Shown here: piece by piece, positions 22,516-30,392 of the stretch | How the letters are laid out: the number at the start of each line of letters is the position of its first letter | How positions within the stretch are numbered: the first letter of the stretch is position 1 | Source: Octopus bimaculoides | Lineage: Eukaryota | Assembly (NCBI RefSeq): GCF_001194135.2 | Contig: NC_069002.1 | Coordinates: forward strand, 18,216,536 to 18,252,346 | Reading direction: 5' to 3' | DNA length: 35,811 bases | Translations under genes and position numbers: made by a program | The notes under the pieces: generated by a model | Told to the model about the DNA's origin: nothing | The model's input: only the letters and a program-made list of their open reading frames with translations | The model's database searches: none

Positions 22516-22637
22516 ATGTATGCTTTGTGAAGTGAATGAACCCTGTGCACATACTGTGGTATGCGAAAATTGTGGCAAAATTCAACTTAAAAGATGCCCC
22601 AAGTGTAAAACACGTATAGAAAGCAAAATGAGAGCTG
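22516..22637 (+). CDS. Internal exon encoding a C3HC4 RING finger (MIB/IAP-type) of a RING plus death domain protein
   Basis: Acceptor TTTTTCCACAG, donor GTAAGA, phase 2 to 1. Encodes CMLCEVNEPCAHTVVCENCGKIQLKRCPKCKTRIESKMRA with all eight zinc ligands. Confidence 0.85.
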
Positions 22638-23304
22638 GTAAGAATATGATTTGATGATCTGTCTGTTTGTCACATGACTTTATGGTATGGAATAATGTTG
22701 TGTCGACCCAGATCTGTCATAATCTGACAGATGTATGATAAAAGATGTCCCAGATGTCTTTTCTCTTTGTTAGTATATCCATGACTACATCCACTTAATA
22801 TTGTCTTTATCCAAGTTGGAAACTTGTCACACATCAAAAGAGTACTGTCTGCAACGTAAGACTAATACATCATTTTACTGAAATATAAATGAAATATCAA
22901 TAAATCTCCAAGGTCCCATCAGTAAATATCAACTGTTTACATTTTTCAGCTTTTATATGAGGTTAATGATTTATAAGTATCTTGGGAAACTGATAATTAA
23001 GGACAACAGTACTTCCTACAACATCAGAGTCAGCTTTGTAATGTAAGAATTTCAATGACAATATCTCAACTGAGAGTTTAAGGATCTGACTCTTAACAAG
23101 TCTCACTGTTAATTCAGTTGTTTTGGAATGTTGGTAAAATGTGACATGGAAAAATTACAACATATTCTACAAAGCTGTCCTCTTTATGATTTTATCATCT
23201 TAAAGTTTTCAGCTGGAGTCGTTTGATATAAAGATATCATCTCTCATTGGGTTGTGTACCCAGATTGTCTCAAGTTAGAATATATACATCGTCTCATCGT
23301 TGTC

Positions 23305-24170
23305 ATCACTGTTTAACATCCGTATTCCATGCTGGTATGGGTTGGACAGTTCAACATGGAGCTGAGCAGATTCCAATTGTCTGTTGTGGCATAGTTTCTA
23401 CTGCTGGATGCCCTTCCTAACACCAACCACTTTACAAAGGGTGCTGGGTGCTTTTTACCTTTACAGGTGTGTTTAGGCAGCACAGACAGTCATGGGTGAA
23501 TTTTATGTGGCACCGGTACCTGCAAAACACAAGACTGTATGTTTGAACACAGAGGTTTTACTTTGCTTGATGTGTTATTTTGAATACGGCAAATTGCCAC
23601 ATCTCCCGATTCCATGTCATTTCCTCACTAAGGCCCAGCATCTAAAGATCCTTTCTCACCATCCTGCGTCTTACTGGGTCTATCCTTTTCACAGGTCCCC
23701 TTCACAATTAAAGTTTGGCACTTCTTTATGCAGCTGTCCTCATTCATACGCATCACATGACCCAACCAGCACAGTCTTCTCTCTTGCACACAACATCTGA
23801 TACCTCTTACACCCAGTTTTCCTCTTAAATCATTTACAGTGTTGTGCATGTGCACTGGCATTACCCATTCAGCAGAGCATGTTAGCTTCATTTTTTTCAA
23901 ATCTTTACAAGTCCTCTGTAGTCAAAGTCCATGTAACATAGCTGTACGTACACAGCCATCATACAATCTGCCTTTCACTCTGAGGGAGAGGCTCTTAGTT
24001 ACCAACAAAGTTAGAAGCTCTCTGAACTTTGCCAAGCTAGTTCTCATTGTAGCAACTACACTTTTAGAACTTCCTCTACCACTGTAAACTTGGTATGCTA
24101 AGTAACAGAAGCTATCTACTACTTCTAATGATCTCCCCAAACATTTGATGGAGTCTATTGTCTGCATTTT
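23305..24170 (-). mobile_element. RTE-X-like LINE 3' fragment with 3' UTR
   Basis: LEVVDSFCYL...KFRELLTLL...KGRLYDGCVRTAMLHG, LRGKLGVRGIRCCVQERRL.WLGHVMRM; UTR on the + strand reads GTTTAACATCCGTATTCCATGCTGG...GGATGCCCTTCCTAACACCAACCAC. Confidence 0.85.
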
Positions 24171-24279
24171 TATTGCTCATTTTACCCACATATTTGCCTC
24201 ACACAAAGACAATTTTCTCTGTTAACCTTCCTGCGATAGCACTACACTTCTTATGTGTACAAAGCCTGCACTGGGTTCA

Positions 24280-24640
24280 ACGTATGGAGTTTCTACCAAC
24301 ACCCTTCTTACATATCGAGCAGGTTGCATATTCTTTAGTCAGAATTTGTATAACTGTCTGTTAGGTTCAATATCTGAAGATCATTTCTCACCATTTCAAC
24401 CCCGTCTTCCTAAGGTTCTCTCTACATTTAGCACCTCTTTATGCAGCTGCCCTCTCATTCACATACATCTCATGTTCTTACCAGCATAATCTTCTCTTTT
24501 GCACATTTGATGCCTCTTGTACCCAATGTTTCTCTTAACACATTCAGACTTTGTTTTACCTATAATGGATCCAAGCCAGATATTATTCTATCAACAATGT
24601 CCTTACACTTGCTGGTAAATAAGTTTTCACCCTATTGAGA
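24280..24640 (-). mobile_element. Second, more decayed RTE-X-like 3' fragment
   Basis: Frames give LRETLGTRGIKC and TLGRRVEMVRNDLQILNLT, matching the same C-terminal region. Confidence 0.55.
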
Positions 24641-24719
24641 GCCTCCACATTGATCGAGGGGACATCACAGAAAGGGTTGGAAACTTTAGTTGGATGCATT
24701 GATGATGCTTGATAGCAAT

Positions 24720-25830
24720 ATGCTAAATTCTTGAGAACCAGTTTTTTGTACCATTTCAGATATTTTTCTTTTGCACTAATGTGTAGTGAATGAGGTTTTG
24801 TGCAAGGGTATAGTGTTTTAGGACACCTGTTATCATTGTCTTTTTGGGCTTAATCATTGCTCATCTGGAAAGAAAGCTGCTTTATTAAGGAGGATGAATG
24901 ACATTGAAAGGTCTTCAAATATTTCCTGAATCAGATAACATTCTGCTGAACAGTGTTGTAGGGGAGTTAGAATGAACGATTATCAGCAGCAACATTTAAC
25001 AAAGAGAGCAGGTGTATGTTTTGGAATTAAGTAAAAGAGGAGATGGATGTTGGTTCGTGAAGTCTAGAGACGAGAGGAGAATGACTTGTCAGAGATTTGA
25101 CACAAATATTTGAAAGGAAAGTTTAAATTAATGGACAAAAGGTGTTATCAAGTGATAATTAAATAAGATAATTGGAACGTTGTTAGATTATGTAGGATAT
25201 CTTACTAAAGAGAGGGTTAGTCTATTTGGTTGTGGACCTAAATGTTGTGAACCTAAACACGGTAGCTATCTTTCTTTCTTTCTTTCTTTAAGATAGATAG
25301 TGGCTGTAAGATACAATACAACAAATGATATTGTCTTCATAATTTATCTGATTTCCATGCTCCCATGGATTGGATGGATGGTCACTGTCCAAGCCAGTTC
25401 TTATTTAGAGTTACTGTCCACCATGATTGGTTGAAGAACACATCTCACTTAAACGTTTTAGCTTTTCTATGGTGGTATGCCCTTCCCAACATCAACCACT
25501 TTCTAAATGGTCCTGTATAAATATCATTGTGACACAGGTTCTAGCAAGATTGTCACCTCCTCAAAGAGATTAAACTTCCTCTCAAACTTATTGTACCACT
25601 GTAGAAAGTATAGAAATGCTTTGTCTGAGACCCTAATGGTCACCAGTTGACCATTGATTGTAGGAATGTCTCAATTATAAAATGCAAATTATTTATAAAA
25701 AAACAAGACATTTCACTATAGAGTGTAAAACTTGGAAATGTTTATTTCAGAAGGTCAAAAGTTGTCTGACCGGGAAGTCCAGATGGTGGCAGAGTCGGTT
25801 GTTGTATATAAAATAACTAATGATTTCTGT
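24720..25830 (+). repeat. Unit 1 of a diverged tandem intron-exon duplication (unit 2 about 26610-27265)
   Basis: Collinear shared blocks, e.g. TTAATCATTGC.CA.CTGGAAAGAAA, GTGTTATCAAGTGATAATTAAATAAGATAATTG..AC.TTGTTAGATTATGTAGGATAT, and AAAACTTG.AAAT.TTTATTTCAG|AA. Confidence 0.85.
25751..25797 (+). pseudogene. Degenerate duplicate of the death-domain N-terminal exon (pseudoexon or rare alternative exon)
   Basis: Same acceptor context as 27160; reads (E)GQKLSDREVQMVAES. The positionally homologous donor (GTTGTT) is weak and in phase 0, incompatible with the next exons. Confidence 0.45.
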
Positions 25831-25839
25831 AAAGTTGAT

Positions 25840-28846: not shown

Positions 28847-29120
28847 GTGTTATTGATTTCTCTCTAAATCATGTCCTTGAACCATTGAAAGAGATCCTTG
28901 TAATGAAGTCATGAACCCATGTTGTCTACCAAACTGTGTTATATAAATAATGCAGTTTTTTCAATTGAATGCACTGAAAGTCAGGGGTGGGGGACGGGAT
29001 AAACTACCTGCATCAACTTGTTATAAAAGCAAGTAGTAATTTTACATTTTAAGACTTATTCTTAGAGCTAGTTTTGAAGTGTGCAGTTCAATTTTAACAG
29101 TTATTTTTTTCAAAGCTATA

Positions 29121-29663
29121 ATAGAAGTGACAAAGGAGCATATTCAGCATATTTTGCTTTATTCAGTTAGGCAACAATGCAACAGAAAGCGTGAGGAATA
29201 TTAATGCAGTATATGAGGATTGAACAATAAGCATAAGCCAGTGTCAATGGTGGCTCCAGAAATTCCGAGCCGGAAACTACAGCCTAGAAGATGAGCCTCG
29301 TCCTGGAAGATCTGTAGAGCTCGATGAGGACGTCCTACAAAAGCTGGTAGAACAAAATCCCTTTGTAACTAGCAGAGAAGCTTTGATTTGGTCATTCAAC
29401 CATTCATCGATACTTGCATGGTTTTGGAAAAATCAGCAAATTGGGTCAATGGATCACACAGAGTGAATGTGTGCTTTTCTTTGCTGTCATGTCTCATGAA
29501 TGAACCTCTTTTGAACCGAATAGTGACAGGTGACAAGAAACAGGTTCTCTATAAATACATCAAGCACCAAAGACAGTGGGTAGGGAAAGGAGAAATACTG
29601 GCACTCCAGCTTGAAGAAGGTCCTCAGACATGTAAGGTGTTGTTATCTGTTTGATGGGATATG
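29121..29663 (+). mobile_element. Mariner transposase pseudogene fragment (HTH plus first catalytic Asp region)
   Basis: EHIQHILLY..GNNATESVRNINAVY...WLQKFRAGNYSLEDEPRPGR, then LNRIVTGDKKQVLY and KVLLSV*WD. Confidence 0.9.
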
Positions 29664-29747
29664 AAGTTACGGGGATGTAAACACACCACCATTGGTTGTC
29701 AAGTGATGTTGGGGTGACAGACACACAAACACACACACACACACATG

Positions 29748-29779
<32 letters not shown>

Positions 29780-29943
29780 TACGACAGGCTTCTTTCAGTT
29801 TCCGTTTACCAAATCCACTTACAAGGCTTTGGTTGGCCAGAGGCTATAGCAGAAGACACTTGCCCAAGGTGCCATGCAGTGGGACTGAACCCAGAACCAT
29901 GTGGTTGGTAAGCAAACTATTTACCACACAGCCACTCCTGCAC
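29664..29943 (-). mobile_element. 3'-truncated SINE family B, abutting the mariner fragment
   Basis: Reverse complement of the 5' half of the 28441 copy. Confidence 0.9.
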
Positions 29944-30186
29944 CTTCAATTGATTTTTCTTTCAAATCTTCACCATTTTCATCCTGCTTTTCCACCTCTT
30001 TATTATTATTTAATTAACATTCTTAGAAACAGAGAACAATGCCTTTTATTTTTTATGTTTCTTAACTATTTCTCATTCCTCTATTGACATAGTTTATTTG
30101 TTATATTTATGACAACCTACAGTACACATCTTTTATGTAATCGTTAATGATTTTGAAATTATTTCTTATTGTTTTATGTTTTGCAG

Positions 30187-30392
30187 GTAGGAATTTAGGA
30201 ATAAGAAATGTCCAACTGGAAATTATCAAGTTAGACAATCCTCTTAACACTAAAGAACAGAGCTTCCAGATGTTGTACAAATGGTACGCAAGTTGTGATC
30301 AAGAGAGACGAACACTGGAGACACTCAGAGAGGCTCTTGAAGCAGCTGAGTGCTTTGAGGCACTTCAATGTCTACCATCAGAAGAAAGGTGA
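30187..30392 (+). CDS. Terminal coding exon: remainder of the death domain and stop codon
   Basis: Acceptor TTTTGCAG, phase 1. Encodes GRNLGIRNVQLEIIKLDNPLNTKEQSFQMLYKWYASCDQERRTLETLREALEAAECFEALQCLPSEER*, with death-domain hallmarks (W..LGR.LG, EQ.FQML..W, T...L..AL). Confidence 0.85.

Follow-up and report, generated by a model that had tools for sequence, protein, structure and literature searches.

A short RING and death-domain gene of Octopus bimaculoides, a putative truncated and mosaic member of an octopod ankyrin-RING-death-domain family

A stretch of 35,811 nucleotides from Octopus bimaculoides (contig NC_069002.1, positions 18,216,536 to 18,252,346 of the forward strand; "the window" below means this whole stretch) contains a three-exon gene at 22516-30392 that joins a RING finger, which appears to be damaged, to a complete death domain (DD). 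It belongs to a family of Octopus proteins with ankyrin repeats, one RING and a C-terminal DD, and the reading that we favour, to which we give about an even chance of being right, is that the gene is a truncated, recombinant member of this family in which the DD is the only working module, and that its product, if expressed, would be a ligase-dead participant in DD assemblies.

Exon structure, RING finger and death domain

The three exons lie on the plus strand at 22516-22637 (122 nt; borders ...ccacag/A TGT ATG ... GCT G/gtaaga), 27160-27228 (69 nt; ...tttcag/AA ACT ... GTT G/gtgagt) and 30187-30392 (206 nt; ...ttgcag/GT AGG ... AGG TGA). All three are preceded by an AG acceptor after a pyrimidine tract, and the donors of exons 1 and 2 are GTAAGA and GTGAGT. 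The first base of exon 1 is the end of a split codon, and exons 1 and 2 each leave one codon base that is completed by the first two bases of the next exon; joined, they form a single open frame of 131 codons with the stop TGA at 30390-30392, which translates as CMLCEVNEPCAHTVVCENCGKIQLKRCPKCKTRIESKMRA / ETPELEKLLQVVAQLLGSKWQQV / GRNLGIRNVQLEIIKLDNPLNTKEQSFQMLYKWYASCDQERRTLETLREALEAAECFEALQCLPSEER, then stop. The list of open reading frames (ORFs) shows the last exon only, at 30147-30392, as the original prediction, which was made from the letters of the sequence, had remarked. Its three exons with canonical sites and matching phases were confirmed: identical exon borders occur in three paralogous loci, and the spliced peptide matches, at 100% identity, an O. 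bimaculoides protein of 130 amino acids that is already annotated (P0001; XP_014767636.1, 'uncharacterized protein LOC106867311'; UniProt A0A0L8I1L0, 'Death domain-containing protein'). The three-exon structure is real, far beyond chance, and the gene model is not new, having been in RefSeq and UniProt since 2015. The gene of P0001 lies on chromosome record CM046622.1 of assembly GCA_001194135.2, where its 7873 bp correspond to 22520-30392 of the window. In the collections searched, the exact protein is encoded on one genomic contig only and does not recur inside any longer protein; RefSeq and UniProt hold no longer model.

Exon 1 encodes all eight zinc ligands of a RING finger (C-C-C-H-C-C-C-C). 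However, a nucleotide alignment with the RING exons of three paralogous loci, L004 (encoding P0027), L003 (LOC106870258, P0002) and L002 (P0008), gave an exact 18-nt in-frame gap after 22538 (at 22538-22539), where the codons A-T-V-E-L-Q (or A-T-V-T-L-H), kept in the other three, have been removed. A second gap, of 3 nt and also in frame, lies farther along the exon, and the acceptor and donor positions are identical in all four. The C2-C3 loop has five residues (EVNEP) in the window copy, 6 of 11 loop residues being gone, whereas 26 of 27 RING-bearing relatives have a loop of 11 residues and one has 10 (P0027, as an example with an intact loop, reads CMLCEVNEATVELQPCAH). The RING consensus is C-X2-C-X(9-39)-C-X(1-3)-H-X(2-3)-C-X2-C-X(4-48)-C-X2-C, and the five residues of the window copy depart from its X(9-39) spacing. 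The Pfam model zf-C3HC4_3 (PF13920) scored 21.3 bits against a cut-off of 27 and matched profile positions 18-48 of 49 only, whereas six of the eight paralogs scanned scored 30.7-42.6 bits over the whole profile. When the six residues were restored in silico, the score of the window RING rose to 32.9 bits (profile positions 5-48), and we therefore attribute the low score to the 18-nt deletion in the first loop. The best PDB sequence matches of the RING half include cIAP1, cIAP2, XIAP and MYLIP. The RING predicted originally as MIB/IAP-type is thus of the zf-C3HC4_3 (MIB/IAP/MYLIP) type, but incomplete: by its residue spacing and profile score it is damaged, not intact, and the window protein is probably not a working E3 ubiquitin ligase.

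The position of the start codon points the same way. The public model of LOC106867311 begins at the second codon of exon 1, an ATG (22520-22522), directly after the TGT of ligand C1 (22517-22519), and the annotated protein accordingly starts past C1. The nearest in-frame stop upstream of exon 1 is a TAG at 22484, and the interval from there to the exon contains no in-frame ATG; unless another exon lies farther upstream, translation must begin at 22520, past ligand C1.

The second module is in better condition. Exon 2 (ETPELEKLLQVVAQLLGSKWQQV) encodes helices 1-2 of the DD and exon 3 helices 3-6. The Pfam Death model (PF00531) matched residues 48-123 with 40.8 bits against a cut-off of 22.6 (E 2.5e-10; profile positions 3-79 of 86), and the best PDB sequence matches were the DDs of ankyrin-3, ankyrin-1, RIPK1, TNFR1, CRADD and TRADD, with E-values of about 1e-4. 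An AlphaFold model built from a 10-sequence family alignment had a predicted local distance difference test score (pLDDT) of 79-96 over residues 41-125, with helices at 43-66 (which covers the alpha1-alpha2 positions), 71-80, 85-97, 107-116 and 120-123. In a Foldseek search with this model the top 30 matches were all death domains, with target TM-scores mostly of 0.6-0.84 and root mean square deviations (rmsd) from 1.5 A, and no RING structure was among the matches; the top match was the DD of ankyrin-G (4o6x, rmsd 1.5 A over 79 columns), followed by those of RAIDD, FADD, TNFR1 and RIPK1, and the ankyrin-G, RAIDD, FADD and RIPK1 matches all had a probability of 1.00. Profile and structural model alike indicate that the DD is real and complete, with a six-helix death fold, which bears out the complete death domain of the original prediction; HMMER on the spliced peptide thus placed one of the two domains that it had named, Death, above the Pfam cut-off and left the other, zf-C3HC4_3, below.

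Linker cassette and mosaic origin of the locus

Members of the family carry a variable run of cassettes of 16-17 amino acids (VCPKSEEKAVQAVVES-like) between RING and DD. No spliceable cassette was found between these two modules in the window, where a single homologue with a TT donor occurs at 25751-25801 on the plus strand (EGQKLSDREVQMVAESV); it corresponds to the first 17-amino-acid cassette of P0027 (L004 34521-34571). It keeps the acceptor ttatttcag of that cassette, and its donor has been lost, GTGAGT in L004 having become TTGTAT here (GT to TT at 25802-25803). The nearest alternative GT would yield an exon of 47 nt and shift the frame, and this, together with the lost donor, is why the public model skips the cassette.

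The two halves of the locus have different nearest relatives. Positions 25887-31416, which include introns, both DD exons and the 3' flank, are colinear with L003 and 88-94% identical to it, whereas the region of the RING exon shows only 68% identity to L003, against about 93% over the DD half. With L004 the relation is reversed: the RING exon and cassette regions are 74-76% identical and the DD half about 69-70%. In a three-way alignment the nearest relative flips sharply at 25888/25889, about 90 bp past the dead cassette, upstream sequence resembling L004 and downstream sequence L003; this switch point is not at an assembly gap, as there is no run of N between 21607 and 33695. At the protein level, the RING half is nearest to a 'CMLCE' group (P0015, P0018, P0027) with DDs of another subtype, the DD has its nearest relatives in P0002 and P0014, which carry RINGs of the 'CRWCQEKK' type, and the pairing of a 'CMLCE'-type RING with a 'PSEEK/R'-type DD is absent from the closest relatives of the window copy. 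These alignments identify the locus as a mosaic of two paralog lineages. The introns around the cassettes and the first DD exon repeat one another, and an exchange between paralogs within this repeated sequence, by recombination or gene conversion, would be the simplest origin of the mosaic.

The 3' flank (30393-31416, plus strand) is colinear with the L003 paralog at 91% identity and has AATAAA/ATTAAA signals from 30931 on; it is probably the 3' untranslated region (UTR). Over the 273-nt coding region of the DD, the window copy and L003 differ at 21 positions, 8 of them synonymous and 13 non-synonymous (Ka 0.063, Ks 0.157, Ka/Ks 0.40); the 13 replacements are mostly charge-preserving or between similar residues, and there is neither a stop nor a frameshift. 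In a by-eye comparison with O. sinensis outgroups, derived changes on the L003 branch were about as many as on the window branch. By this pattern of substitutions the DD still looks to be under constraint, although the data fit weak constraint and a frame too young to have been broken alike, and do not separate the two.

The Octopus family and the sequence upstream of the RING exon

Homology searches led to Octopus proteins of about 250-650 residues which, in Pfam terms, consist of several ankyrin repeats, one zf-C3HC4_3 RING, the variable run of linker cassettes and a C-terminal DD. The family comprises at least 27 clusters at 50% identity; all 24 of the RING-plus-DD cluster representatives that we looked up belong to one of three species, O. 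bimaculoides, O. sinensis or O. vulgaris, and they are spread over several chromosomes. The next-best matches are multi-DD proteins of echinoderms and amphioxus, which lack a RING, and DD-only proteins of octopods, one of them from Argonauta. Intact genes are exemplified by that of P0008 (L002), which spreads two ankyrin exons, one RING exon and a pair of DD exons over 14.6 kb. The gene of P0027 (L004), of 36.6 kb, has four ankyrin exons and, besides its RING exon and its two DD exons, two cassettes. The window copy belongs to this family by its homologous RING and DD exons at the same splice positions. Compared with its paralogs (P0027, XP_014768682.2; P0008; P0032, XP_014776763.1; all O. bimaculoides, with many more in O. 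sinensis and O. vulgaris), in which RING, cassette and DD exons are homologous and have the same splice positions and phases, it is 60-84% identical over the C-terminal half of the RING and 45-86% over the DD; it differs from them by the 6-residue loop deletion, the dead cassette and the lack of an ankyrin exon in the window.

The names that the NCBI and ENA pipelines give to family members (MIB2, MIB2-like, MIB1-like, ankyrin-3-like, PSMD10-like, uncharacterised, with up to 22 'isoforms' per locus) reflect similarity to Mind bomb 2 (MIB2). MIB1 and MIB2 proper have MIB_HERC2 and ZZ domains N-terminal to their ankyrin repeats, two or three C-terminal RINGs and no DD. By contrast, Pfam found no MIB_HERC2 or ZZ domain in the scanned octopus members, including the 545-amino-acid P0032, which showed only Ank, one zf-C3HC4_3 and their own Death domain, and the window is also without such domains; for the lack of MIB_HERC2 and ZZ the family members are not Mind bomb orthologues. 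A literature search found no published description of a cephalopod ankyrin-RING-DD family, and the architecture seems to be a new and undescribed arrangement of known modules.

Many public models of the family are fragments (P0017, P0021, P0011, P0013, P0040), which start at intron ATGs before a RING or cassette exon or run into introns. At L003 (LGKD02002247.1) the RefSeq model of P0002 begins within an intact RING exon (2071-2213, CRWCQEKKATVTLQPCQH...) but in the wrong frame, which is why the public protein is without the RING that the locus encodes; 2 kb upstream the scaffold comes to an end. In the 'isoform' numbers, which run up to X22, tandem copies and alternative use of cassettes are probably lumped together. 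On CM046629.1 (L004 and L002, 11.58-11.70 Mb) about 30 kb separate P0027 from P0008, and another ankyrin gene comes after P0008 (L002 27234-34585), so that part of the family is tandemly clustered; the window copy appears solitary. Two octopod DD-only proteins, P0048 of O. bimaculoides and P0042 of Argonauta hians, have the DD subtype of the family and are 43-44% identical to the DD of the window. P0048 is named 'RIPK1' by NCBI, with no kinase domain evident on inspection, and P0042 'uncharacterized protein LOC115224810 isoform X3, partial'; both are candidate donors of the DD or candidate binding partners.

A search for ankyrin exons in the window by tblastn, with 13 and then 70 family proteins, found none, and returned only the three known exons and the one cassette. 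A profile hidden Markov model (HMM) built from the 118 residues before the RING in the family, which picks up those exons in both L002 and L004 (E 1e-12 to 1e-27), gave a best match of E = 8 across the window, where 20 kb of readable sequence lie upstream of the gene. In the paralogs, the last ankyrin exon lies 3-5 kb before the RING exon (3 kb in L004) and all four lie within 23 kb. The original prediction, which had likewise found no upstream exons in this window, suggested a lineage-expanded gene, possibly annotated as MIB2-like, with upstream ankyrin repeats; this description fits the family, but not, by the HMM search, the window locus. An ankyrin-like match on the plus strand of intron 1 ('FHSEGEAL', 23940-23999, E 0.03-0.06) was rejected as spurious, because it lies within a dispersed repeat (23586-24322) in which the HMM reached only E = 8. 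This repeat has two copies in L003, in opposite orientations, and its minus-strand ORFs resemble the tail of a reverse transcriptase of a long interspersed element (LINE). Intron homology was uninformative as a marker of the truncation point, as the paralogs share among themselves just about 100-240 bp upstream of the RING exon.

Minus-strand retrotransposon remnants occur upstream of the gene at 14236-16041, 11818-12177 and 21249-21746; a Pfam scan of intron and upstream ORFs gave a single match, a weak RVT_1 at 14540-14887 (minus strand, E 3e-4), the remaining remnants being LINE-like in look. Some 1.8 kb past the stop, a segment at 32207-32290 (plus strand) matches (E 2.7e-5) a 28-amino-acid bridge of the chimeric O. 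vulgaris protein P0031 (RING-DD-LRR-DD, LRR being a leucine-rich repeat) and holds a consensus AAG/GTGAGT donor at about 32263; it might represent either an additional, conserved exon downstream or an element of the family's 3' UTR, and is treated here as conserved 3' flank. A 29-bp minisatellite of about 25 copies (83% match) at 33260-33990 yields stacked, overlapping spurious ORFs (HPVTKLSSQCTLSPSSP...). At 34764-35090, a minus-strand ORF (…VSAKFVPKLLSPDQRD…) resembles the N-terminus of mariner/Tc1-type transposases, and the plus-strand ORF at the same position had no Pfam match. The window has 11 runs of N with a total of 2676 N, including 3739-4026, 6428-6977, 9653-10474, 19534-20033 and 21450-21607; because many are flanked by TA, TG or TATG-type microsatellites, these runs are probably unresolved simple repeats and not missing unique sequence.

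A proposed death-domain-only product and its alternatives

The favoured reading may be put together as follows. The locus would be a 5'-truncated copy of a gene of the Octopus family. Of the family's exons, the window shows only those for the RING and the DD and a single dead cassette, and the mosaic would have arisen by recombination or gene conversion in the repeated introns that flank the linker cassettes. If expressed, the locus would give a protein of about 130 residues with the DD as its sole working module. Such a short protein could join the DD-DD assemblies of the intact paralogs or of their DD partners, and, since its damaged RING would neither position an E2 nor transfer ubiquitin, it would act there as a ligase-dead competitor or modulator, as CARD-only and PYD-only proteins do on inflammasomes. 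Several points weigh against this reading. About 2.6 kb of N gaps upstream, notably 19534-20033 and 21450-21607 (2.5-3 and 0.9 kb before exon 1), might conceal an exon; moreover, the upstream search reaches 22.5 kb only, and the public locus record (L001) starts no earlier than the window. The 5-residue loop is beyond textbook spacing, yet its consequence for folding and activity has been judged from primary structure, and AlphaFold is no judge of the loop: the RING remnant (residues 1-40) had a pLDDT of 37-51, but the intact RING of P0008, modelled as a control with the same 10-sequence alignment, was also low (31-54), so that the two are not discriminated. As to the DD, the synonymous excess is marginal (one-sided binomial p = 0.054), the exons are 92.3% identical to L003, no higher than the introns (88-94%), and the open frame could be a chance survival since a recent duplication.

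An alternative is a dead gene fragment, i.e., an unexpressed partial duplicate in neutral decay that is predicted as a gene because its exons are open and its splice sites intact. We regard this as a possible but clearly less probable explanation. It would agree with the failure to detect ankyrin exons in the window, the deleted RING loop and destroyed cassette donor, the absence of a start codon able to include ligand C1, the exons being no better conserved than the introns, the single contig with the exact protein and the lack of a longer protein in the searched collections, and the many family models that are plainly fragments. Neutral decay has more difficulty with the six intact splice signals of the three exons and with two RING-exon deletions that are both in frame, or with eight RING ligands that have been kept despite about 25% nucleotide divergence from the nearest sampled paralog; a Ka/Ks of 0.40 over the DD with mostly conservative exchanges, and a sister copy that, by eye against O. 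sinensis, has changed about as much as the window copy, also argue against it.

At the other extreme, the original prediction supposed an E3 that recruits substrates through DD-DD contacts; as a full-length, working enzyme, it would have its 5' exons beyond the window, more than 22 kb away, or in gaps, and its short-loop RING would have to be active. For the window copy, the loop deletion, the start past C1 and the lack of an ankyrin exon make this unlikely: the ankyrin exons of paralogs lie close by (3-5 kb for the last, within 23 kb for all four) and none was detected in the 20 kb of readable upstream sequence here, the 5-residue loop is unique with respect to 27 relatives and outside X9-39, the zf-C3HC4_3 score is below the Pfam cut-off, and no longer model exists in RefSeq or UniProt. 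The proposal nevertheless has in its favour that exon 1 opens inside a codon behind a strong polypyrimidine acceptor conserved with the paralogs, as is found in an internal exon, that all eight zinc ligands are present, and that introns in octopus genes are long, the P0027 gene occupying 36.6 kb, with N gaps close upstream of exon 1. For the intact paralogs the same idea would be a fair hypothesis. Still more improbable, indeed very much so, is an assembly artefact in which deletion and mosaic junction result from collapsed or mis-joined near-identical paralogs; the assembly is short-read and gap-rich and the family has many similar copies, but neither the deletion nor the junction is at a scaffold join, there being no N gap from 21607 to 33695, and the two halves are 7% and 25% off their closest sampled relatives and hence are not copies of those loci.

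The favoured reading, a truncated copy reduced to its DD, can be compared with several known systems. The closest solved structures and sequences to the window DD are the DDs of ankyrin-G/B/R, RAIDD, FADD and RIPK1, with only 20-29% identity, and none of these proteins has a RING. The order of domains in cIAP1/2 is BIR-UBA-CARD-RING. Like cIAP1/2, the octopus proteins have a zf-C3HC4_3-type RING and a death-fold domain on one polypeptide, but in the order RING then DD, with a DD instead of a CARD and no BIR; oyster IAPs, which combine a death-fold domain with a C-terminal RING (PMC8917759), show the same likeness and the same differences. Vertebrate MIB2 is an E3 that has the DD protein RIPK1 as a ubiquitylation substrate and holds back the cell death triggered by TNF (PMC5912950; PMC7815719), and the octopus family likewise has an ankyrin region followed by a zf-C3HC4_3 RING and is linked to death-domain signalling. 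It is reasonable to think that an intact paralog could be an E3 recruited to DD complexes through its own DD, which would echo MIB2 acting on RIPK1 (PMC5912950). CARD-only and PYD-only proteins (COPs and POPs) are small decoys derived from duplicated genes (PMC3775265; PMC7555848); the window copy may resemble them as a recent, lineage-restricted partial duplicate that retains a death-fold interaction module alone, although it belongs to the DD subfamily and to another phylum, and the likeness is one of analogy only.

A wider hypothesis, which we offer as a speculative one of low probability, is that octopods possess a private, diversifying family in which an MIB-like ankyrin-RING ligase is wired to DD signalling via its own DD and reshuffled by recombination in the repeated introns near the cassettes, and that the window copy is a retained DD-only decoy or regulator. 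If this were true, the CARD-only and PYD-only proteins of mammals would have a counterpart among invertebrates in the window copy. RING ligases and death domains are each well understood, and vertebrates join them in trans, e.g., MIB2 and cIAPs on RIPK1 complexes; the octopod ankyrin-RING-DD fusion would put ubiquitin ligase activity within DD assemblies in cis. Because many public models are fragments or chimeras, counts of 'MIB2' genes and isoforms in octopus genomes are unreliable at face value. The window locus is itself a degenerate family member, which will not surprise a specialist, but it shows members of the family being recombined and truncated, and the family as a whole is a reasonable target for research on innate immunity and cell death in cephalopods.

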